Counted from the first letter of the stretch, positions 6,064 to 61,482 are shown. The stretch: DNA of 64,000 bases from Oculina patagonica (GCF_052425735.1 NC_135759.1:5456001-5520000), one strand, 5' to 3'. Notes: generated by a model not told the origin, from the sequence alone. Made by a program: numbers and translations.

Positions 6064-6379
6064 ATGCAAGGCAGTGATCGGTTTTCTATCAATTCTCTCA
6101 TTGATAGCAGAAGTCGAGGAAGCTTGAGCAGTGATGCGGAGGACACTCAAGACATTTCTGGCCCCGAAGACGACTCCGCGCAGGAGACAAGACAGGCAGT
6201 GACATCATTCACTGTCAAAGATATTTTGGACCCACACAAGTTTAACGCTCCAAAAAGGCGCTTAAGCGAAAGCGATTCAGAGACTGAAAGCCCTAGTAAA
6301 GAAGAATCAAGAAATAATTCCTCATGGCATCCATGGATGGCGGCTACAAGATTTAGCCGAACGCAAAAATCAAACGGCG
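6064..6379 (+). CDS. NK1: NK1/slouch (NKX1-family) homeobox gene, coding exon 1
   Basis: ATG at 6064. Carries eh1-like motifs FSINSLI and TSFTVKDILDPHKF (NK1-type) and WHPWM. Donor G|GTAAGT at 6380, phase 1. Confidence 0.9.
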
Positions 6380-6907
6380 GTAAGTCCCACATTGATTGTG
6401 ATAAATCAAATTTCTCTTGAGAAGAAAAGTTTGTCCAGCGCGATGTCGCGATTTATTTAACTTAAATTTTTAGTTATTTGGTGATTGAAGACAAGATTTT
6501 TTTTATTTTACTGCAGCAATATTAATATAAAGTTCTCAGTATGTAACACACCTAAAAACGATTAATGTAAAAACAGCTAAATCACACCCGGCATCATTTT
6601 ATATATTCCCATTTTTGACCACTGAGCTCACATTAACAGCCATTTAGCTTAAAAGCTTTACCACGGCAGCAATTAATTCTCTATAAAATGTATATAAAAA
6701 GTATTTCTAGTTTTACTAACGTTTGTGCCGTTTAAATAATTTAATGTTGATAATTTGTCTTCTCCTCGCACGACGACGCCGACAAACGAGTCTGCACAAA
6801 TATCTCCTCAAACACGATCAGTTAACCACTCCATTGAAATGCTTGTTATCTGAAAGGCAGACGAATTACTCGTCGATCATTAAGTATAAATTTTAATTTC
6901 TCTTTGA

Positions 6908-7426
<519 letters not shown>

Positions 7427-16135: not shown

Positions 16136-17050
16136 CCATCAATATCATTCGCTTTCACTTTTTAGCTACGTCACGGACTGAACTCATCTTGAAAAAATTG
16201 GCTAGTTTTTTCGAGTTTGTCGTTCGTAATCCGTCTTAATCTCCGTCAGTCGAAACCATCCTTGGTTATTTTTGCCTTTTGGTGTTTTTCTATGTAAGAA
16301 AACAATTATTTCAAGGTTTCCTTCAATTTGGAAGTAATCAGAAAAATGACTTAAAATACCGTTCTTTAAGCCACACTTTTATCCCATACACCAATTATCT
16401 GAGAAACTTGCATTGGGACTAAAACGAGTGCGCCCCAATCATGACAGAAATGATGTTGCCAAAATGGGGACGAGTGGTCCAAATAAACGCCAGCTGCACA
16501 GAGGGCCAGAGTACGGTAGGAATAAACATATATTTGATTAGATACTTTTATCAGATGACACCGCCCCCTCCTCCCCGCAACCTCCCACCCAAAAAATCAG
16601 ATCAGGGCGCTTTGGCAGAAGTTTTCTGGGCTTCACGCTCTTCTGCAGTCAAATAATATTGAGGCTCAAAGCAGCAAAACGATAGAGTCGCTACCTCCAA
16701 AGTTTACAGCGATTTAATTCCAAACTTTAGAAAGCAAGTTCAATCTAAAAAGATCAGATCGATGCGCTCTACAAATGTGTCTTGACAACTTTCTTTGGTA
16801 AATTGTAATGGCAATTTATTATAAACGAGTTTGCTAGTTGTGAATGATGTATATAGTTTTTTGGTTTCTTAAGATTGATTTAAATAGTTTTACGTTATTT
16901 TATTATTTAATTTTCATTGTAAGATACTAGCAGTAAATGCTACTCTATAAATCCGAATGTGGAAATAAAGTTTATGTTATGTAATAAATCAGCCATAGAA
17001 TCACAATCCAAAGAGCAACTGACCAACTGCAAAACATTATAAAATTGAAT

Positions 17051-27650: not shown

Positions 27651-27972
27651 GCCGCCCAAGTGAGTCTTTATGTAGAAATATAGCATGATAAATTTTGCAT
27701 AACTGAAAAACTCGGAAAAAAATTCCGAGTACCAGATGGGATTTGAACCCACGACCCTCCGTGTTCTAGGACGGATGCTCTACCACTGAGCTACTGGGAC
27801 TCTGTGGCGAGCAAGGGTGAAATGTGGGTCTTGACTAGAACCGCATCACGCAGTCACATAGTCAAATCAGTACAAGTACACATACATAGGACTCATAACT
27901 GCATCGCGCAGTCACATTAAAGCATACTTGAGATGCAACCATCCCGCCGCCCAAGTGAGTCTTTATGTAGAA
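27651..27972 (-). mobile_element. tRNA-headed repeat bounded by 27-bp direct repeats
   Basis: gccgcccaagtgagtctttatgtagaa at 27651 and 27946. Minus strand has TAGCTCAGTGGTAGAGC...GGTTCAAATCCC. Confidence 0.6.
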
Positions 27973-28827
27973 TTAATATACAATCTTCGTTCACTGTCCA
28001 AAATCCACGCGCGCAATTGGTTAAAATAGATCACGTGATTTTGCTTTACCTGTCGTCAGCAAACTCCGACAGTGCAGTATTGACAATAATGCACACAAAT
28101 CGTGCATTATTGAAATGTCTTCAGCTTCAAGGCTTGTAGAAGTGGAAGAAAAATATATTCTTCAAATTATCAACGATCCAATACCAAACAAAATCGAAGA
28201 GGATAACAACTTGAAGCGCTTTTATGTTCAAAGGTAAACTGCAGCTCAATAAATAGATTTTTGTGTGCGATTGACTTGCTTGTAGTTGCTTGATTGTGAA
28301 AGCCATCGACTTGCTGACTGTTTCACTGCTGTTTTTATGAACGACCACAGCTGATGGACGACTTTACGAACCATTTTAAGCTTTATTTCTGTACGGGTTA
28401 TTTGTGAATTTTATACTATTGATGTTATCCCGTGTAATTATGTACTACTAGACTTCTTTAATACTTTTAAACACAAAGCTTATTGTTTGAAGGTTGTTAA
28501 GTCGATGATCGTTTGCAGTGTACTCAGATTGTATATTAAAAGGGTTAGAGTCTGTCCGTTCGTGTTTTGTTGACAAATACACGCACTTGCTGGCCTCACA
28601 ATGAACTCGAAATTTTCAATACTGCACTCGGCTACGCCTCGTGCAGTATTGAACATTTCTCGTTCATTGTGCGGCCAGCGCGTGCGTGTATTTGTCAACA
28701 AAACACTCACAACAGTCTCTAACCCATAAATATAGCATGATAAATTTTGCATATGCAGTGTGGATATCATGCAATATGCAGTGTGGATGTGATTTCCGTT
28801 TGCGTAGAAATTGTCAAGTGTACTCAC

Positions 28828-28972
28828 ATAATTTGATCGTGTCTCGACACTTGATGGTTCCAGCTCTAAAGCCTGTTTCCAAGCTAGTTCAGCCTCTTTT
28901 AACTGCTTATTGTGGTAATACAATACTCCAAGCAACTGCAAAGTACTTGGTTCCCGTTTTATCGACAAAGCT
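28828..28972 (-). CDS. TMTC1: TMTC1-like exon
   Basis: ttgcag|(R)ALSIKREPSTLQLLGVLYYHNKQLKEAELAWKQALELEPSSVETRSNY|gtgagt. Confidence 0.85.
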
Positions 28973-29860: not shown

Positions 29861-30423
29861 CTTGAGGTATAAAACCAAAAGACAATCAAGTACATGCAAA
29901 CACTTCATCTAGTCATCGATTTGCCAAGAACGATTTTTTCAATTTCTTATCTGGTTCTTCCTATAACGAAAAAATGTGGGTTTTACACATCAAATGTAAT
30001 CTTGACTGTCATACTGTGAAAGCTCTTCTAAGTAACCCCCACCCATCCCTAGATAGTAACAGTAACAAGGCAAATGCACTTTCAATGGTATTCATCCTCC
30101 ACGACATTTACTTATTATTGTTGCTTTTTTGTGAGAATGTGTTACAAAACAGGACTAAAACATTAAAACATTCACTATATTTCTTCTTTATGAAACCCAA
30201 CTGAAATATGACTTGCAATAAGTCCCCGGTCTCTGTAAGCCCCCATGTCCCCCCCTCTCCCCCTCCCAAAAAAAGCTCTTAAATTAATAAGCACCCGGCC
30301 AGCTTTTACGGTTCTTCAAGTAGTAATCGCTTACACCAAAGCTAAAACCACGACAACTGTTGTCTTTCCCATATGTTAGAACAGTATGTGAACAGCAACT
30401 CTCATGTAATCTTTCTTGCTTAC

Positions 30424-30584
30424 CCCTGTTGCCAAGGAAAACTGCATAATTGTTGTACGCATCACCGTTGTTGGGTTCTAAAGTCAACGCTTTTTTGTAA
30501 AACTCTTCAGCTTCATCGTACTTCTGTTGGTCACTGAGCACACCAGCAGTGTTCATCACAGCATCCAAATAATTTGGTTTTAAC
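30424..30584 (-). CDS. TMTC1: TMTC1-like exon
   Basis: tgtcag|(R)LKPNYLDAVMNTAGVLSDQQKYDEAEEFYKKALTLEPNNGDAYNNYAVFLGNR(G)|gtaagc. Confidence 0.85.
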
Positions 30585-31107
30585 CTGACAAAGAAAGTAT
30601 CTACCCAATCAAAATAAGCCTTTCGTAGTTTGGAAGAATATGGAAGGTATAACTTTGCAACATCAAGTAAAGCCCTCAAATTTTAATAGAGCCAAGTGTC
30701 GACTTTGGTTGGTCCGAACTTGTACGCACTTACGTCGAGATCAAACTGAAATAGCTTTTTTGGCAAATAGCGTGCACTTGTGAGTAAACTAGCGAGCTCG
30801 TTTGGTGACTCAGCGCAACTCTGTTAAGTCAGGGCTTTAAACTGTGTAGGGCAATCTTTATCTACGTCTGCAGCTTTTGACTATTATCATTTAGCGAGCA
30901 CTACTACTATCTATTGAAAATCAAATTGAGTACAGCAAATTCAAAGACGCGCTAAATTGGCTTCTGTGGTATTTAGTGCCTGTGGTAAATTTGACGGTAG
31001 CACGCACAGCTCTAGAAACGTCTGGACATATCGCAACCATTTTCAATCAGTAGAAAGGATAACTTGTAGACGCCATGTTATAAATTGCAGTAGGTTTTCT
31101 GTTTTAC

Positions 31108-37974: not shown

Positions 37975-38474
37975 NNNNNNNNNNNNNNNNNNNNNNNNNN
38001 NNNNNNNNNNNNNNNNNNNNNNNNNNNNNNNNNNNNNNNNNNNNNNNNNNNNNNNNNNNNNNNNNNNNNNNNNNNNNNNNNNNNNNNNNNNNNNNNNNNN
38101 NNNNNNNNNNNNNNNNNNNNNNNNNNNNNNNNNNNNNNNNNNNNNNNNNNNNNNNNNNNNNNNNNNNNNNNNNNNNNNNNNNNNNNNNNNNNNNNNNNNN
38201 NNNNNNNNNNNNNNNNNNNNNNNNNNNNNNNNNNNNNNNNNNNNNNNNNNNNNNNNNNNNNNNNNNNNNNNNNNNNNNNNNNNNNNNNNNNNNNNNNNNN
38301 NNNNNNNNNNNNNNNNNNNNNNNNNNNNNNNNNNNNNNNNNNNNNNNNNNNNNNNNNNNNNNNNNNNNNNNNNNNNNNNNNNNNNNNNNNNNNNNNNNNN
38401 NNNNNNNNNNNNNNNNNNNNNNNNNNNNNNNNNNNNNNNNNNNNNNNNNNNNNNNNNNNNNNNNNNNNNNNNNN
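37975..38474. other. Assembly gap (500 N)
   Basis: Run of N; the round length suggests a scaffolding spacer. Confidence 0.99.
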
Positions 38475-43255: not shown

Positions 43256-44715
43256 TTAAGCAATCAGTTTAGTATTTATGTAACTGAAAGCTTGTAACGT
43301 ATTGATGAAATATACCACAAGTATATTGTATATATCCACGGGGAAAATGTTTGGCCTCGTGGACACGGCATGGTCTAGTGGTCAAGGCATTAAGGCTTGC
43401 AATCTGGATGTCCCTGGTTCGAAACTTCGGCCTCAACAGTAGGTGAATTCGCAACTCTGAAATGCCAAATTTCACCTTCTAGGCTATACAAACAGGGTCA
43501 GTCTTTCTGCACTAGCTAGGATATTTAGCACTACAATGCTTATTAATAAAAGCGATACCTAAATAAAGTGGATCAATTGTTATTTTGTATTTGAGCTTAC
43601 AATATGTAGTCTTGCTGAATATCTCAGCATAAATAATTGAATATGATTTGCTAGCCATTTTTTTGTGATCAATTTAGTTATTTAAAAAACACAGAGATAG
43701 TAGCTTAAAACCTTTTTGCAACTGTCCGTAAAACAAAGCCTGTATAAAGTGACGAAGCTTAAGCTCTTGGCGAAACTAGTAACAAAATCATATCACACAC
43801 AATTAAATTTTAATTCCTTTTTCGCTTGGTGGCTTTACCAAAGTTACAAAACCACTTGGTTGCTTGAACGGCATCAAAAAACTAACAGATAGTTGAACAG
43901 GCTCGCAGGAACATTTTTTTCCAAATTGAAGCTTTGTAGCGATTTTTATAATCGAGTTTTTGCGAAAACAGAGCACGAAATTTGTCGCGATTTTACCATC
44001 AATATCATCCACTTTCACTTTTTAGCTACGTCACGGACAAAGCTTGTTGTCCGTAATCCGTCTTTAGTTAATCTCTGTCAGTCGAAACCATCCTTGGTTA
44101 TTTTCGCGTTTTAATTGTACTCCTTTCGTGTTTTTCTATGTTTGAAAATTATTATTTCAAGGTTTCATTCAATTTGGAAGTAATCAGAAAAATGACTTAA
44201 AATACCGTGACATTGCTTCCTTTTAAGGAAAAGCTATCACTCTTATTACCCCTATACCAATTATCTGAGAATCTTGCATTGGGCCTAAAACGAGTGCGCC
44301 CCAATCATAACAGAAATGATGTTTCCAAAATGGGGACGATTGGTCCAAAAAACGCCAGCTGCACAGAGGGCCAGGGCACGCAGGGATAAAAATATATTTG
44401 ATTAGATACTTTTATCAGGTGACACCGCCTCCTCCTCCCCGCAACCTACCACCCAAAAAATCAGATCAGGGCGCTTTGGCAGAAGTTTTCTGGGCTTCAC
44501 GCTCTTCTGCAGTCAAATAATATTGAGGCTCAAAGCAGCAAAACGATGGGATTGCTGCTTATGGAGATTTAATTCAAAACAACAGAAAGCAAGTTCAAGT
44601 TAAAAAGATCACATACGTTCTACAAATGTGTCCTGTCATCTTTATTTTTGGTAGGTCAGCTCTGGCATCAACAACCAAAGAGCAACCGACCAACTACAGA
44701 ATTTAAATTGAATTA
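43256..44715 (+). repeat. Copy/haplotype B of block 14755-17050
   Basis: Colinear similarity, lacking the A-specific MITE and LINE insertions. Confidence 0.9.
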
Positions 44716-44815
44716 GTGATCCCCGTGAGCTCAGGTGGGTTCGAGAAGCTTCCATGAAGACGTGTTGATGGACAGTTAACCAACAGGCCACATAGCCCAG
44801 TCACCTCTGATGCTA
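44716..44815 (-). pseudogene. Remnant 3' end of a paralog of the TIR-barrel gene
   Basis: Encodes SIRGDWAMWPVG* versus SVRGEWAMWPVG*, followed by a similar 3'UTR. AATAAA at 44641-44646 (minus). Confidence 0.75.
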
Positions 44816-45343
44816 ACAAGGTTTAATTTCAAGAATTTATAAGGAGCGCCCATCTGAAGATTCTTAGTCGTCAGTTCGACCAAGGAATGATGGGACGGGA
44901 AGTCAGCCTGTCACCCGTCGCTTCTCATACTATGTTATTAGACACGGCTGGCCAAGGGCGAGTGAGACCAAGTCATGACAGAAGTATAATGCTGTCAAAA
45001 TGGAGACGAGTGCCCCAAATGAACGCCAGCTGCACAAAAGGCAAGGTTATGTCGGAATAAAAACTAAACAACTTATTTGATAATATACTATAATCACGGT
45101 TTAGAAATAGTTTAAGCGCTTCAGCCCCCAACCCTCCGCCTCCCCCATCTCGCGAAAACGAGTAAGTACAACCAAAAGAATCACATACACTCAACAACTA
45201 TGTCCTAAAAACTTTATTTGGTTGATCAGCTATAGAATCAACAACAAAACAGCAAAATACGTACGACTAAGTACATAGAATCAGTGATCCCGTTGAAGCT
45301 AATTGGGTTCGGCAAACTTCCATGAAGATGCGTTGATGGACAT

Positions 45344-48300
45344 TTAACCAACAGGCCACATAGCCCATTCACCTCTGACGCTACTATGGGAATCGAGCCA
45401 CCATCGCCCCGTCATCTGTACCCCCAGGACTTTACCCTCGTAGCACACCTGATGCGTGCCGTATTCCTTGGTAAACTGCAACTTAGAACCTGAAGAGAAA
45501 ACAGTTAAGCCGCAGGTTATGGTAGCTACTTATATGCCACTATCTGATCCGCCTAGCCCCCAAGGAGAAATGAAGGTGTAACGTGCGTTCGGAACCGTCC
45601 TCATACAAAACTGATTTCTTACACGTCAACATGCGCTTTAGATGTTCGACAAACGTTGGATTGACATGATAAAGCGACTGTTGAGACCTATCATAAAATC
45701 AGCTAACTTTAATTTGGTCAGGGCAGTACCAAATGGGGAGATTTCAATGTGTGTGTAAAATAAAAGATGCTTTTTTTAAAAAAAAAAATGAGAGAGCAAA
45801 AGAAGTGGCGAGACAGTGAACATTGCAGCGGGTTCAAGTTTATGCATGCGCTCCTGGATATGTTATTTTTAAACACTTTTGATAACTTTATTAAATACGT
45901 TTTAGTTTTGAACCCACCTGTGATCTTTCCATTTTTGAAAGTAAAAGGGCCAACTTCGTCGATTCCTGTTCCTGTAAACTGGTTTCTGTTTTGGAAAGTC
46001 ATGTTGACATCGATAAGCCATTTACTTCCTGCACTTTTTCCTTCAAACGCACGATGGTCAATGAAATAACCTATCCAGTGACCTAAAATAAACAAAATAA
46101 ATAAATAAATAAATAAAATGAATAAATGAATGAATCAACCAACCAATCAATCAATCAATCAGTCAATCGAACAATCTGTCAGTCAATCAACCATTTAACC
46201 AGCCGGTCGGTCGGTCGGTCGGTCGGTCGGTCAATCAGTCAGTCTGTCAAATAATCAAGTAATCGATCGGCAGTTTTCCCAGGAGTGGAAATTTCTTTGA
46301 AGGCCGGAGCAAGGGGTAAGGAGACTCCGCCAAGTCCAATAGAGTCTGGTTAAACATATACATTTTGTCTATTGAAACTGAATCTAAGAGAACTACGAAG
46401 GCTAAGTGTGCTTAGAAACTGCGATAGGGAGTACGTACATAACAAATAACAGCAAACAAGAAATTGTTATGGAAAATACCTGATGGCAGAGCTTGAGAAC
46501 TCTTTGAAGAGAGGACAACGGACAATTCCTTAGACTCTGCCGCGGACAACTTGGCTGATTTAGGTTTTGGGGTGGGAGCTGCTGAAGATGCCACAGCCTT
46601 TGCAGCCTTAACGGGAACGACGCCTTTAAGCTTCTCCATAATTTGGTTGATTGCTTCAGTCTCACTGGAGCACTAACATGGAAACAAAAGAGTCAGTCTG
46701 ACACTCTTGTTTGTGCGATATGAGTAAATGTATGATGTCCCACAGTGGTGTATCAAAAAATGTAAATGTTGTTTTATAGAGCCTTTTTTAAGCTCCGAGA
46801 TAGCTAGTTTCTAGGCATGCGACTAAAACAGAAGAAACAAATATTTCAAATGAACATAAAATGATGTGCCAAAATCGGCACATCAGATCATTTTACAATC
46901 CTCGCAAAACCGACTATCTCCCAACCCCAAACTAAGAACAATAGGAAAGTGCGAGTCAGAGATATGAGGGATAGTGCGTGGCGGCCGTTTGGTAGATGGA
47001 TGTTGGATAAGGACTGGTCCCATGTTATCGCTGCTCCTACGTGCAAGCAAAAGTTTGATTTGTTCTCAAGTGACTTACAGGATGCCATTGAACGGTTCCT
47101 GCCGTGGAGAACGATTAAGGTTAACTGCTCTGACAGGCCCTGGACTACTAAGAAATTAAAGATCTTGATCAGGAAACGCCAGGAGGCCTTTCTCAAACAC
47201 GGCAAGAGTTCTGATACCTACAAGTTATGGCGGAACAAGGTTCAGACGGAAATAAGATCTGCTAAGAAACGTTTCTACCAAACCAAGGTTGCCGAGCTGG
47301 AGCTCGACCAATCAAATAGTACGAACTGGTGGAGTCATATCAAACGGCTTACTGGGAAAGACATTAAACAAGACTGGTCCTACCAGTTCTTAGGTGAAAA
47401 TTGCCCAGATACACCCGCTCTCGCTAATAAGGTCAACGATTTTTTTCTTGGTTTAACGGACCTGTTTACCCCCTTAGAGCCTCCATCCTGCGCACCCCAA
47501 GAGGTTCCGCCCGAGTTCTTGGTATCAGAGAGTGAAGTACTGAAAGCCCTCCATGCAGTCAAGACCCGTAAAGCTGTTGGACCGGATTTGATTCCTAACA
47601 GAGTGCTAAAGGAGTTCGCTCCAGAATTAGCCGCAGTAGTACGTGACATTTATAACTCCTCCCTAGTTGAGGGCAACTTCCCTGACTCCCTGAAAGCCAC
47701 CATATTAAACCCGATTCCTAAGATTTCCCCTCCACAACAAATCGAGAAAGACCTGCGCCCAATCGCTCTCACCTGCGCGTTAGCTAAAGTGATGGAGGGT
47801 TTCACCCGTGCCCGTCTGATTTCCCAAGTTACTAATAAGATTGACCCACGGCAATACGCGTGCGCTGGCCGGTCTTCTACCGATGCGCTGGTTTACCTCC
47901 TTCAAGCGGTGTATGAAGCAGTCGACACTGGGAACAGCGGCGCAAGGCTATTTATGGCGGATTTCTCTAAAGGGTTCGACATGATCGATCACGAAGTTCT
48001 CATCAAGGAATTAGAGAAATTGGACGTGCACCCCGTTTTGGTGAATTGGATTAAGGCCTTCTTAAGCAATCGAACCCAGGCTGTGAGAATCGGGAACACT
48101 GTGTCTGATTGGAAGACCCCTAAGGGAGGTATCCCCCAAGGCACCAAGTTAGGAGTAATCCTATTCTCTATTATGACGAACAGCCTCCTACGTGCTTGGA
48201 ACCTTAGAATTAAGTTTGTCGATGACACAACAGCCTTAGAAATCATCCCTAGAAATAGTGTAAGCTTGCTTAACTTTGCTGCCAACGATATTTTTGAATT

Positions 48301-50706
48301 TTCAAACGAGCACAAGATGAAACTTAATCCTTCTAAATGCAACGAAATGTTAATCAATTTTATGAGTAACCATAATTTTGTAATTAATCCTATTATACTT
48401 GGAAATAACGTAATCGAACGAACCTCAACATACAAACTCCTTGGAGTTTACATCAGCAGCGACTTAAAATGGGACTACCACATAGACTATATTGTTAAAA
48501 AAGCGAACAAAAGACTATTTTCTCTAAGGATACTAAAGCAATGCGGTGCCACGCCGGTAGCATTAGCCAAAGTATTTGTTACGGAATAGTGCGTCCTATT
48601 TTAGAATATGCCGCCCCTGTCTGGCAGAACATTCCTGACTTTTTAGATAATAACATTGAGAGAGTCCAGAAGAGAGCCATGTTTATTATTTGTCCTTCCC
48701 TCGACTACAACGAGGCATTACGGCTGCTCGGCCTCACTTCATTGAGAGAACGGCGCCAACATCTTTGCCGGCAGTATGTCTGTAAACTTCAAGATGTAAA
48801 TAGCCCTCTTCATTTTCTTTTGCCTCGACGTGAGGAGATTGTACATAACTACGACTTAAGATCCGGCACAAGTCGAAGCACCATCAAACCTCGCAGAACG
48901 AAGCGTTCGCAGGACTTCGTCACTTTTCGATATTACACCTCGAACTAGCTTGTTTATAATAGAACCTTTTATTGTATATATATTGTAATTTTTATATTTA
49001 TAGTTTATATTTATACCTTAGCTTGTTTTTTACTCTGTAATTCAGTTATTAATACTGCAATGAGTGTCTATTAAACATTACATTACATTATTATATAAAA
49101 ATCCCAACTGGCCGATGGTAGACCAGTTGGCTACATACAAAGCGCGACCGAAGATTTGAACCAGGGACCACCGAAAACAAATCCAACTAGTGGAAGGGTG
49201 TCGGGGTTGAACCCGGGACCTCCGGATTACAACACCAGCAGCCTTAACCACTCGGCCATGCTGCTTTCTGTGTATTAGTTTTACCTACCAAGTTCCGGCG
49301 ATAAGTTACCCGTGATATCTAGAACAGCTCGACTCGAAAGTAACTCCTTCTAACTCCTTCCGCGCGTTAAAGCATTACCGCGCGCGTTAAAGCCTTACCG
49401 AGCTCATGAACACTCCCTGAAAATTTGCGAGAAGAGCATCGACATGAGCATATTCCTCCATGTCAAAGTTTTCGGTGACTACAGGCATGATTATTGGCGT
49501 TTTCTTGGTGAGGTACTTGCGCTGTATAAAGAAAAGCAAGACGTCTTTAAGGACAAAGAAAGTGTATGTACGTCAATATTAGACGATATCAGACGGTAGA
49601 AAAACATCGGTATCAGACCAGAAAACTTTGCCAAACTTAACTTTCTAATGTTGTTGGATAATTGGAACAGGCCTCTTTCCAAATACGACATTTATAATTT
49701 CTTTCAACTTCTTGCCGTTGAACTCGTCAACTCAAATTCTTTTTTTCACATCCATCTTGTACGTGTAACATACAACACCAACTGACATTGGTCGTGACTT
49801 TATCCACAGTGAAGTTTCGAACACTTCGGGGCAAACGGAAAGTTAAAGTAAACTACTAACAGACCTCATTCTCCTCCCCTCCCCTTCACTAAAACAGTAA
49901 GTAAAACTTGATTAGATACAAGATTGACAATTTTGCCTGAAAGTTGTTTTTTAGCAAATAGTAAATCTTCATTGAATTTTTGAATTGAATTGTATCTTAC
50001 CATGGCGTAGTTGTACTCAAAGACACACTCATCTGATTTTGCCCACTTCTCGTTTAGAAAAATCAAGAAAACCTTGGCATCGCGGACATTTGCGACAATA
50101 TCTTCGCGGTAAGTGTTCCCTCCGTGAATATCTGTGCACATCCAAGTACTGATGCCACGGCTATGGCAGAAAGAACAGAAATAAAAAGGAAGCTTTTAAA
50201 CCTATGTTAAATAAGTAAAAACCTGACGATCTTAAAGAAAAACTCTACCAATACCACCACTATCACAACCACCACCACAATTACAACGTACCTTCATCGC
50301 CGCAACCACCACCACCACTACAAGCACTACCACCAGCAGCATCACGATCACCACCACCACCATCATCTTCATCACCATCACTACAACCACCACCACTACC
50401 ACTATTACCACCGTCGCCATCACCATCACTAAAGCCATCATCGTCATCATCACCTCCTTCACCACCACCATCGCCACCACCGCCGCCACCATTACCAGTA
50501 CCGCCACTCTCACAACAGCCACCGTACCACTTACAGTTGAGTATGGTCGAATTACTAAAATATTGTCATGCTTTCAGACCAACTTTCACAGTGGTGTACT
50601 AAAATATATTCCGTACGAACGCTTACCTATGGAATACGCTTCTCGCTTTGTCCGCTAACTTCTTAGATGAAGCAACGTTCAAACTCAAAAAATAATCAGC
50701 ACACAT
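45344..50706 (-). CDS. TIR_2-type domain + Ala/Lys/Pro/Ser linker + predicted beta-barrel protein, 288 aa, six coding exons (50627-50706, 50001-50160, 49399-49521, 46480-46672, 45918-46082, 45344-45489)
   Basis: All introns are GT-AG with matching phases, and the joined 867 nt is open to the final stop. TIR pattern DYFLSL...GISTWMCTDIHGG...IVANVRDAKVFLIFLNEKWAKSDECVFEYNYA...IIMPV. Minus-strand AATAAA at 45213-45218. Confidence 0.85.
46095..46250. repeat. Compound tetranucleotide microsatellite
   Basis: (AAAT)n grading into AATG, AACC, AATC, GGTC and AGTC units. Confidence 0.8.
46862..49090 (+). mobile_element. 5'-truncated LINE (CR1/L2-group) with reverse transcriptase, inside a TIR-gene intron
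   Basis: End of the endonuclease domain (IGTSDH); RT motifs DLRPIALT, DFSKGFDMIDH, GIPQGTKLG, KFVDD. One frameshift near 48585 into YGIVRPILEYAAPVW...IERVQKRA. (CATTA)n tail. Confidence 0.92.
49091..49266 (-). mobile_element. tRNA-derived SINE, 5' half (3' half at ~46765-46860, split by the LINE)
   Basis: Same family as 26033-26332 (aaaatcccaactgg...ttgaacccgggacctcc...aaccactcggcca). Confidence 0.7.
50245..50525. repeat. (CAC/CAT)n degenerate trinucleotide tract, intronic
   Basis: Low-complexity accaccatc repeats between two exons of the TIR gene. Confidence 0.85.
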
Positions 50707-58655: not shown

Positions 58656-61482
58656 CCCTTAGAATCCTAAGGTTCTGGTATTTTTTAAGCAGTTTTCTGG
58701 GCTTAAGCTAATCTGTCGAATTTCGTGATTGCATATAAGAAGCTCAAGTAAAAATGTGTGCTGTTTCAAAACACTGAGGGCTCAAAGTTTCATTGTGACG
58801 TCAGCATTCAACCGTTGCTTTCTTGGTGAGCGAGCATACGGGCTCGAATCTGGCGAATATTTCGTTTATAAGTGTTTTCTTCGAGTCATTTTCCACTGCA
58901 GAAGCCCCCAGGCTGGCATCATTAAGCTAGAATTCTGGGTAGAGGCAAACTTCTGAAAGAAACCAGAGGTGAGAGATGATTTGACGATGATTGGAACGCC
59001 AAAAACATTTGTATCTTTGGTTTTGGTCCGTCAATTATTAAGTGGATTAAAACCTTTTACTGTAAAATTGAAAGCTGTATTCTTAACAATGGCTGGTCAG
59101 GTAACTTCTTCCAGCCTCAAAGAGGTGTTAGGCAGGGCTGTCCTCTTTCACCATATTTATTTAAATTCTGGCAGCGGAGATATTGGCTTAGACAATCCGG
59201 AGTAACAGGAAAATAAAAGGTTTCTATGTAGACAGAAATGAAGTCAAGTTAAGAAAATATGCAGATTCGATGCAGATGATACTACTCTTATCCTAGACGG
59301 GTCAAAGGAGTCCCTAGTCGCAGCCTTACAAACTTTAGATGATTTCAGCAAGATCTCCGGCCTCAGGCTCAATGATAGTAAAACGGAAGCTCTTTGGATC
59401 GGCTCTAAGAGTGGGCAAGAAAAAAATTATGTACCAGGAAAAGACTTAAAATGGCCAAAATGCAAGGTAAAAGCACTTGGTTTATGGCTGTCAACCGATC
59501 CAGACCTGGCGATAATATTAAATTATAAAGAAAAAACTGAAAAAATTAGAAAGTTCTTAAGCTGCTGGCAATACCGTAGGCTCACGCTGCTAGGGAAAAT
59601 CACCGTAGTTAAAACACTGGCCGCATCACAGTTGGTTTATTTATTAGCGCCGCTGCATTCTAACCACCATGCTATAAAAGAAATAAACGACTTTTTCTAC
59701 CATTTCCTATGGAATGGTAAAGGTGACAAAATAAAGAGAAAGATTATGATTAACGATCCTGGAAATGGAGGTCTGAAAATGATTGATCTCTGCTCTTTTA
59801 ACAAATCTCTCAAAACAACTTGGGTAAAAAAGTACCTGGACACGACCAACAAGGGAAAATGGAAACTCCTCTTCGATATGGAACTTAAGAACTATGGCTG
59901 TGAAAATCTCTTCCGGTGTAACCTTAATGTTAATGACACAAAGAAAATGATAAAGGTCACGGATCCCTTCCTCAAGGAAATATTAGAATACTGGGCCGAA
60001 ATCAATTTTGAGCGCCAAGCAACTTCTGAAATCAATTTTCGCGAACAGAGTTTATGGTTCAACTCTTTAATAAGGGTTGATAACAAGCCAATGTTTTTTA
60101 AGGATTGGCTTGAAAAAGGTATAACGAAAGTTAAACACCTTCAAAGGACGGAAAACAACGGATTTCTGTCCCTTAATGATCTTGCTTCAAAGTACGACAT
60201 AAAATTACGTTCTCTCAGTTTCTATGGGTTATTATCAGCTGTAAAATCCCTTCGAAAAACCGTTACCGGAGCTGCTGAGATTAGAGAAGGCAACTCTGAA
60301 ACACTTTGCGACAAGATTATAAAAAGTCAAAGACCAGGCCCGTTAATTTACAAAAAGCTTATCAGTGCAAAAGGTCTAACCCCGAGCAACAGCCAAAACA
60401 AATGGCTTCAGGATTGCAATCTTTTAGATGAAAAAACTACTTTCAACTGGGAACAAGCGTACCTCATGGCACCATGTTATACCAAAAGCACCAAACTGAT
60501 CGAGTTCCAGTTTAAACTTTTGCATAGGCGCATACCAACAAACAAGTTCCTATTTAAAAATAGGAAGAAAAGAAAACGAAAATTGCACTTTTTGTCACAG
60601 TGCCTCAGAATCATTAATTCACCTTTTTTGGTCGTGTAGCGTTACATCCTCCTTTTGGAAAAGGGTGACTGACTGGCTTCAGGAAAACCTCTCGATAACA
60701 GGCGAATTCACTTTATTGAATACAACAGCATTGGGCCTGAGGCCGGATCCTCATTCAAAATATGCGCTTCAATTGAACTATGCTTTGTTGCTAGCGCGGT
60801 ATCACATATGGAAAAACATTTGTATCGAAACATGGTGGTTCATGAGTTAAGTTGTCTCTCTGGCCGTTCTGTGGATGGATTCCGAGACCTGCCAAGGCAA
60901 TTTGGACAACTTTTGACTTCCAAAGAATGCGTTCGGTGCAGTATTTTGCTGGTAGGATTGGGTGGCTCGACACTTATAAAAAATGTATGAAATAGAGGTG
61001 AGTGGACTAGCATTTCGCCGAAACGGCTGTATTACCCAGTCATTCCTTTCGGTCACCAATAAGGAAATTACAGGTTTGCAAGCATTGCTCTAATCGAATG
61101 GTAATTGCTCAGTCTGCTGAAAGATTGATGAGAAGTTTTCTTAGTGAACGGAAAGAAATAGGTTTGAAGTTTGCTGCAAATGTACACTTTTGGATTCGAA
61201 ATTATTTTTTCATTAAAAAAATTGGAGACAAAGATGTGCGTTTTTTGTTGTTGTCCCATGAAGTAGAAAACGGGCATTTTCGGAATTGTTGCAGAACAAA
61301 CAACCATATACAACGGCAATCTGGAGCTGTAGTCAGTTAGTTGGCTTTTAAAGCTTTGAAAATTATCACTTTGCCATAACGAGGGCTCATTACTATCAAT
61401 TGTCCAGATATGTGAAAGCTGCAGATTTTTTAATTACTGCCGGTATTTTCCACGCACATATGCGTTGTTAGGACTTAAAGGG
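58656..61482. mobile_element. piggyBac-type element (TTAA, CCC...GGG), decayed
   Basis: ttaa|cccttagaatccta and taggacttaaaggg|ttaa. The restored empty site gatctttttttaatcgaccc matches an uninterrupted repeat unit at ~61631. Confidence 0.75.
58990..60815 (+). mobile_element. L1/Tx1-group LINE fragment (RT pseudogene) nested in the piggyBac-type element
   Basis: FGFGPSIIKWI, RGVRQGCPLSPYLF, ADDTTL, FLWNGKGDKIKR..GGLKMID, FQFKLLHRRIPTN; several frameshifts. Confidence 0.88.

Follow-up and report, generated by a model that had tools for sequence, protein, structure and literature searches.

Proteins in which a TIR domain shares a single chain with a second domain include bacterial TIR-STING, TIR-SAVED, and Cat1 (CARF-TIR) and, among animals, SARM1. 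A recent survey, the 2026 TIR atlas, stresses how many invertebrate TIR clades, cnidarian ones included, are unstudied, and several eukaryote-only clades with cnidarian members are uncharacterized (PMC13142454). The gene described here, which lies on the minus strand at positions 45344-50706 of a 64,000-nucleotide (nt) stretch of the stony coral Oculina patagonica genome (GCF_052425735.1 NC_135759.1:5456001-5520000; hereafter the window), is a concrete and conserved candidate among them. The window as a whole is animal DNA with a G+C content of ∼38%.

The gene is intact and conserved among stony corals, and it encodes a cytosolic protein of two domains: a TIR domain (residues ∼4 to 137), a linker of ∼45 residues, and a C-terminal β-barrel (residues 184 to 288). 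TIR proteins are a known kind, and what is new in this one is the partner domain. We tentatively favor a role as a one-chain sensor-effector of the innate immune type, in which the barrel would be regulatory and the TIR would provide the output through Glu75, most likely acting on NAD+; by analogy with described systems this is a possible function that we would put somewhat short of an even chance.

A conserved coral gene for a TIR-barrel protein

Six exons, separated by GT..AG introns and with agreeing phases at the five junctions, join into 867 nt of open frame encoding 288 amino acids (aa). This is the gene model that the original prediction had proposed, and the peptide strings quoted there are all found in the spliced product. 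The same prediction had called the gene hidden, which does not hold: the product is identical at every residue to the NCBI entry "uncharacterized protein LOC144641739 [Oculina patagonica]" (P0073), and the gene is already in the NCBI annotation, without a name. An exact-product look-up of P0073 in the contig collection returned no record.

Exon 1 (50627..50706, minus strand, as are all six) opens with the ATG at 50706, encodes residues 1 to 26 plus two bases, including the first TIR strand (DYFLSL), and ends at the donor GTAAGC. The TIR core follows in exon 2 (50001..50160; residues 27 to 80), with the BB-loop Gly-Gly and the S-x-E-C-x-x-E helix, in which the Glu75 codon (GAG, 50016..50018, minus strand) aligns with the catalytic Glu of NAD+-cleaving (NADase) TIRs. 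Exon 3 (49399..49521; residues 81 to 121) adds the final portion of the TIR, while exon 4 (46480..46672; residues 122 to 185) carries its last helix and then the disordered linker, together with a short helix of conserved sequence (KLSxxESKELS). The barrel is divided between exon 5 (45918..46082; residues 186 to 240), with strands 1 to 4, and exon 6 (45344..45489; residues 241 to 288 and the TAA at 45344-45346), with strands 5 to 8 and the conserved G-x-W-A-M-W-P end. The linker (residues ∼138 to 183) is rich in Ala, Lys, Pro, and Ser and differs in length and sequence among orthologues. In the full-length AlphaFold2 model it is predicted to be disordered, with a predicted local distance difference test (pLDDT) score of <50 at residues 142 to 158 and 177 to 180, apart from a conserved helix at residues 165 to 175.

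A transmembrane helix and a signal peptide are absent, because the highest 19-residue Kyte-Doolittle mean over the whole 288-aa protein is only 0.78, and Pfam recognizes nothing but the TIR, in agreement with the predicted lack of membrane-targeting segments and of other known domains.

A Porites harrisoni hypothetical protein of 288 aa (P0008) is 68% identical to the Oculina product, colinear with it, and free of gaps at the exon junctions, and a search seeded with P0008 led to P0073 of O. patagonica. At the Porites genomic locus, the exons again number six, and their borders fall on the same residues as in Oculina. Three further orthologues of 285 to 292 aa run uninterrupted on intronless 1.2-kb contigs from two sequencing-run assemblies and one Joint Genome Institute (JGI) sample, and we take these contigs to be spliced transcripts. 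Together, the orthologues from Porites and the intronless contigs span 284 to 296 aa. The colinear Porites orthologue with the same six borders and the three intronless contigs exclude chance as the origin of the spliced frame.

Whether upstream coding exons might make the gene part of a larger protein had been raised beforehand as one of the points on which the model could fall. On all three intronless contigs, an in-frame stop precedes the ATG and the start is at the same place as in the Oculina gene; therefore, there are no upstream coding exons that would make the protein part of a larger one. In the Oculina genome itself, an in-frame stop lies 12 codons 5′ of the ATG. Besides Porites and Oculina, Desmophyllum probably has the fusion of TIR and barrel as well, judging from a partial model (P0006). 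These genera fall on both sides of the deep split between "complex" and "robust" stony corals, and the fusion is therefore old.

Several features of the locus lie beside the coding exons. Intron 3 contains, on the plus strand at 46949-48948 and thus antisense to the TIR gene, a 546-aa open reading frame (ORF) with an RVT_1 domain (E = 1.9e-23), followed by an overlapping 135-aa ORF; this looks like an inserted non-long-terminal-repeat retrotransposon, which makes up much of the 2.7 kb of the intron. In intron 1, an imperfect trinucleotide-type repeat at 50232-50522, rich in CAC, CAT, and CAA on the plus strand, can be read on the minus strand as a Val/Met-rich ORF of 96 aa, which is spurious. 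Two transcript-derived proteins of related corals (P0077 and P0078) contain the TIR exons and then run into sequence equivalent to intron 3, yielding TIR-only products that lack linker and barrel; either unspliced RNA or a genuine short isoform could account for them.

The last ∼40 nt of the coding sequence and the 3′ flank (45174-45383) are copied ∼570 bp downstream as a partial tandem duplicate of the gene end (44603..44815, minus strand; 78% identity), a remnant outside the protein. A related-coral transcript (L003) has short tandem copies of the end of its own coding sequence in its 3′ untranslated region (L003:1024-1156), and with both observations in hand, the gene end seems prone to duplication. 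From the recurrence at 44603-44815, the last 13 residues of the protein (SVRGEWAMWPVG) had been suspected of being transposon derived; this was rejected, as the G-x-W-A-M-W-P tail is kept in every homologue, those from bacteria included.

The TIR domain

The N-terminal domain had been predicted to be a TIR, and the whole protein passes the thresholds of both Pfam models, scoring 42.5 bits against TIR_2 (PF13676; cut-off, 28; residues 7 to 132) and 30.9 bits against TIR (PF01582; cut-off, 21.3). The Porites orthologue scores 47.5 bits against TIR_2. In an exon-wise scan, exon 2 alone matched TIR_2 below the threshold (E = 1.7e-5), and the PADLOC model of the Thoeris ThsB TIR matched the protein at E = 1e-5. 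According to the TIR atlas, the TIR_2 model matches nearly every TIR clade and marks no subtype (PMC13142454); therefore, a TIR_2 match alone does not mean an NADase-type TIR.

A closer indication comes from the search of solved structures with a profile of ten orthologous TIR domains, a shallow profile of close relatives. The only structures reached were those of NAD+-cleaving TIRs: Cat1 of type III CRISPR (E = 6e-5), plant RPP1 (E = 4e-3), and then RUN1, RPV1, and a plant NADase. Neither SARM1 nor any animal receptor or adaptor TIR was reached by this sequence search. In the alignments, Glu75 falls on the catalytic Glu of the S-x-W-C-x-x-E helix (WDEL in Cat1; CLDEL in RPP1 and RUN1), and Gly40-Gly41 of the BB loop falls on glycines of Cat1. 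The Glu that the original prediction had placed in a CxxE helix is thus present, and it is invariant in the ten orthologues, as are the BB-loop glycines, with a mean column identity of 81% over the TIR.

The modeled TIR half alternates between strands (E) and helices (H) in the order E4-8, H15-26, H41-52, E57-62, H64-80, E90-95, H105-113, and H125-137. It overlays the TIRs of SARM1 and SPARTA with a target-normalized template modeling score (TM-score) of ∼0.6, and TRIF is also among the fold matches. The Glu of this motif is necessary for NADase activity in TIRs and insufficient alone; NADase activity of the coral TIR is plausible.

The barrel and its relatives

AlphaFold2 modeling of the barrel of the Porites orthologue from a 15-sequence alignment gave eight consecutive strands and no helix with high confidence (pLDDT, 92.9; predicted TM-score [pTM], 0.83), and the barrel half of the full-length Oculina model scored pLDDT values of 85 to 96. 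A Foldseek search of the barrel model against the PDB placed the Cap15 cyclic-dinucleotide receptor first (7n35_B; E = 4e-4; TM-score, 0.58 to 0.65; 8 to 10% identity), followed by designed fluorogen-binding barrels (TM-score, 0.60 to 0.68) and a domain of quinohemoprotein amine dehydrogenase (TM-score, 0.67 to 0.69), with neisserial surface-protein barrels, bradavidin2, fatty acid-binding proteins (FABPs), and a lipocalin-like protein further down. In a viral fold library, nothing was found below E = 1e-3, and the third entry was a protein named SMODS-associated 2TM beta-strand effector, of the Cap15 family. At the level of the fold, the model and its neighbors bear out the eight-stranded, avidin/calycin-like barrel that had been proposed for the C-terminal domain.

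No specific known family claims the domain. The exon-wise Pfam scan gave no match to residues 184 to 288, and 15 members of the barrel family gave no significant match at E values up to 5, the single marginal one being to Lipid_bd (E = 0.095) in one of the 15. There was no match in NCBIfam or PADLOC, and a sequence search of the PDB with the barrel profile returned a sole, meaningless match (E = 0.22). As predicted, the architecture goes unrecognized among named animal TIR proteins: we found no description or name for it, or for the barrel family, in the literature or databases.

When only the 54 aa of exon 5 were used as the query for phmmer, 30 of 1.84 billion representative proteins matched at E ≤ 0.001; one of the proteins from this search, an SRCR-repeat protein (P0018), was discarded as a spurious repeat match. 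Stand-alone barrels of 108 to 128 aa occur in Pocillopora, Stylophora, and Oculina and in the hemichordates Ptychodera and Glandiceps, and one unidentified transcript encodes the barrel as a tandem pair. In amphioxus (Branchiostoma), an isoform (P0024) stops just past strand 4, at the site that an intron occupies in the coral genes, and this hints at an old shared intron position. The stand-alone paralogue of Oculina (P0064; 108 aa; L087:10001-12807, CM126636.1, ∼21.3 Mb) lies on the same chromosome as the TIR-barrel gene, and its intra-barrel intron is at the same position as the exon 5/6 junction of that gene.

The search with a profile of animal barrels only extended to bacteria, with the protein P0070 matching at E = 1.2e-9. 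P0070 in turn had 129 relatives when it was used to scan prokaryotic genomes, with each species represented by one genome, and 80 of them were kept for analysis. These are mostly from Planctomycetota (Gemmataceae, Isosphaeraceae, Zavarzinella, Tautonia, and Aquisphaera), with a few from metagenome bins labeled Alcaligenaceae. Aligned by hhalign, 20 animal and 80 planctomycete barrels matched with a probability of 99.3% (E = 1.5e-20) over 100 columns at 33% identity.

Across these 100 sequences, 15 residues are invariant (S185, G186, W188, G190, F215, G225, D227, Y250, H253, Y257, G259, G268, W270, G280, and P286), the predicted N-terminal G-x-W (G186 and W188) among them, while no more than one or two sequences depart from the rest at F232, K248, and W285; for D194 and R196, invariance is limited to the animal barrels. 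The conserved residues occupy alternate positions along each strand. If the barrel is a simple meander, one of its ends would gather the polar residues (D194, R196, D227, K248, Y250, and H253) and the opposite end the Trp and Gly residues; a barrel that is closed at its base and has a polar pocket would be expected to show this layout. The barrel is a separate family, older than the TIR fusion and not specific to it, that is shared by Planctomycetota and a few marine invertebrates.

Proposed function and competing explanations

In the sensor-effector scheme that we tentatively prefer, the barrel would have a conserved candidate binding site, for a partner or for a ligand that is small and polar, formed by Asp227, Lys248, Tyr250, His253, and Tyr257, which Asp194 and Arg196 may join in animals. 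Occupancy of the barrel would then alter the association of TIR domains with each other, and once assembled, the TIRs would use Glu75, most likely to consume NAD+ or to produce a signal from it. Bacterial TIR-STING, TIR-SAVED, and Cat1 follow this logic, as does SARM1 in animals, and gating of the TIR by the barrel is plausible. In favor of the scheme are the confirmed gene model, the sequence matches of the TIR to NAD+-cleaving TIRs and its overlay on SARM1 and SPARTA, the ligand-binding barrels (Cap15, designed fluorogen binders, bradavidin, and FABPs) among the fold neighbors of the C-terminal domain, the conservation and probable clustering of the polar barrel residues, and the modularity of the barrel, which is found alone and in tandem as well as fused.

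Several observations weigh against this scheme. In the TIR, the position of the Trp in the W-x-x-x-E motif is occupied by Glu71, which is invariant in the family (S-x-E-C-x-F-E), an unusual feature, and the motif is therefore not present. Of the "TIR_2 (NADase-type)" label in the original prediction, the first part stands, but the second does not follow, as the model covers nearly all clades and the Trp is replaced. Many non-enzymatic animal Toll-like receptor (TLR) TIRs retain the Glu that corresponds to Glu75, and its presence is no proof of activity. In the full-length AlphaFold2 model, the TIR half is only of moderate confidence (pLDDT, 50 to 75) and the arrangement of the two domains is not confident (pTM, 0.48). 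The fold matches of the barrel are generic (TM-score, 0.58 to 0.69; 9 to 17% identity) and fit any small meander barrel, designed ones included. The planctomycete barrel genes stand alone; their neighbors are housekeeping or varied genes, with alaS (alanyl-tRNA synthetase) at 20 of the 80 loci besides WD40, response-regulator, and assorted genes, and they offer no clue to function, no defense-gene context, and no TIR at any of the 80. Nor was any other effector fusion of the barrel found, unlike what is typical of promiscuous sensor domains.

An alternative hypothesis is that the protein is a non-enzymatic adaptor, whose TIR would serve as a scaffold that docks on coral TLR/interleukin-1 receptor-like or other TIR proteins, with the barrel as a targeting or cargo module that might bind lipid or membrane as in TIRAP. 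We regard this as the main rival and as somewhat less likely than the sensor-effector scheme. The Pfam TIR model PF01582, which mostly follows the animal receptor/adaptor clade (PMC13142454), passes its threshold; the fold matches of the TIR include TRIF, and those of the barrel include FABPs and a lipocalin-like protein; the Trp ahead of Glu75 is missing; and coral genes classed as "TIR-only" are usually seen as signaling parts (10.1101/2023.04.26.538298). However, the sequence of the TIR reaches NADase TIRs and no animal receptor or adaptor TIR, the invariant polar residues of the barrel (Asp, Lys, His, and Tyr) are not a lining of the lipid-binding type, and the protein lacks both a membrane anchor and a conserved signal for lipidation.

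It is less probable still that the barrel is the working part, as a small enzyme or metabolite binder with an old, non-immune role, and that the TIR only oligomerizes or places it. Such a role would fit a family that is older and wider than the fusion and is found alone in bacteria, corals, and hemichordates, with its Asp-Lys-His-Tyr-Tyr set kept across bacteria and animals, its bacterial genes in non-defense surroundings, and a stand-alone paralogue retained in Oculina on the same chromosome. Yet no catalytic family resembles the barrel, and among coral orthologues it is the TIR half that is more conserved, with Glu75 and the BB-loop glycines unchanged, which argues that the TIR has a constrained function of its own.

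A more specific version of the sensor-effector scheme, which we regard as improbable as it stands, is a STING-independent one-chain coral receptor in which a barrel of bacterial ancestry would sense a nucleotide-derived messenger and so drive assembly of the TIR NADase. Candidates for the messenger would include products of the expanded set of cGAS-like enzymes in corals and signals derived from NAD+, and the stand-alone barrels might be buffers of the same ligand. Were this true, corals would have in this protein an animal equivalent of the TIR-STING, TIR-SAVED, or Cat1 of bacteria.

Finally, it is hardly credible that the annotation is an artifact, that the model joins exons with no relation to each other, or that the gene is a pseudogene in decay, as the reverse-transcriptase element within intron 3 and the partly duplicated 3′ end might suggest, since the frame is open over five canonical junctions, the exon borders recur in Porites, three contiguous presumed transcripts of other samples share the architecture, and both domains are strongly conserved.

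The coral protein is a clean candidate, and one open to test, for another type of animal TIR protein that would be enzymatic or gated by a ligand. It is short and soluble and should express easily, and the conserved polar residues of the barrel are ready-made mutants. O. patagonica is a classic model of Vibrio-induced coral bleaching, and immune-challenge tests are therefore practical. The barrel also defines a new domain family that links Planctomycetota with marine invertebrates.

Other features of the window

Elsewhere in the window, exons resembling those of a homeobox gene lie on the plus strand at 6064-6420 and 6992-7426, the second with a full homeodomain (E = 9.8e-23). On the minus strand, exon-like ORFs at 28480-28968 and 30284-30679 match the tetratricopeptide repeat models TPR_17, TPR_1, and TPR_2 and probably belong to one multi-exon gene. 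A tRNA-like sequence at 27727-27800 (minus strand) scores 56 bits against the Rfam tRNA model, but ARAGORN assigns it no anticodon, and either a tRNA-derived repeat or a pseudogene would be a possible explanation. A 335-aa ORF at 59632-60639 (plus strand) has no Pfam match and, judging by its composition, may be the end portion of a retroelement ORF. A repeat of ∼135 bp, probably an interspersed element, has three copies in the window (44959-45096, 44291-44417, and 16425-16553) at 72 to 76% identity, and a run of 500 N occupies 37975-38474.

Comparison with known systems

Among described coral genes, the "TIR-only" class counted in surveys of anthozoan immune repertoires is the one to which a domain-based survey would assign the gene, as the protein is likewise cytosolic and the TIR is the sole domain recognized by Pfam, NCBIfam, and PADLOC. 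Unlike a "TIR-only" product, it carries a conserved and well-folded barrel of 105 residues that is missing from the domain libraries, and some coral genes counted as "TIR-only" in repertoire surveys thus have a second domain.

Calycin-type barrels (avidin, bradavidin, lipocalins, and FABPs) resemble the coral barrel in being antiparallel meanders, eight stranded in the coral protein, with a G-x-W on strand 1. There is, however, no match to any of these at the level of the sequence family, and TM-scores to them are 0.46 to 0.58; the C-terminal helix of lipocalins is missing from the model, and FABPs have ten strands where the coral barrel has eight. Cap15, the minimal β-barrel cyclic-dinucleotide receptor (S-2TM-β) of the cyclic oligonucleotide-based antiphage signaling system (CBASS), is the best fold match, but a weak one and no better than designed barrels. 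The coral protein lacks the two N-terminal transmembrane helices of Cap15 and has a TIR as its N-terminal half. Homology of the barrel, as opposed to likeness of fold, is with the planctomycete family of ∼140 aa (e.g., in Zavarzinella formosa, Tautonia sociabilis, and Aquisphaera insulae), which has the invariant residues in common with it, but those proteins are bacterial and stand-alone and often have an acidic tail.

On the side of the TIR, SARM1 is likewise an animal protein, with an equivalent Glu and a regulatory domain in the same chain, and the model overlays it at 16 to 17% identity; the coral protein differs in having neither ARM nor SAM domains and in the replacement of the Trp before the Glu. 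In overall design, it comes nearest to bacterial TIR-STING, TIR-SAVED, and Cat1, in which a TIR with a catalytic Glu is similarly joined to a compact putative ligand-binding domain, and Cat1 is also the closest solved TIR by sequence. The logic proposed for the coral protein would be the same as theirs, running from ligand to assembly to NAD+ cleavage. In the coral protein, the TIR comes first, its partner is an eight-stranded barrel instead of a STING, SAVED, or CARF domain, and the whole is encoded by an animal gene with introns.

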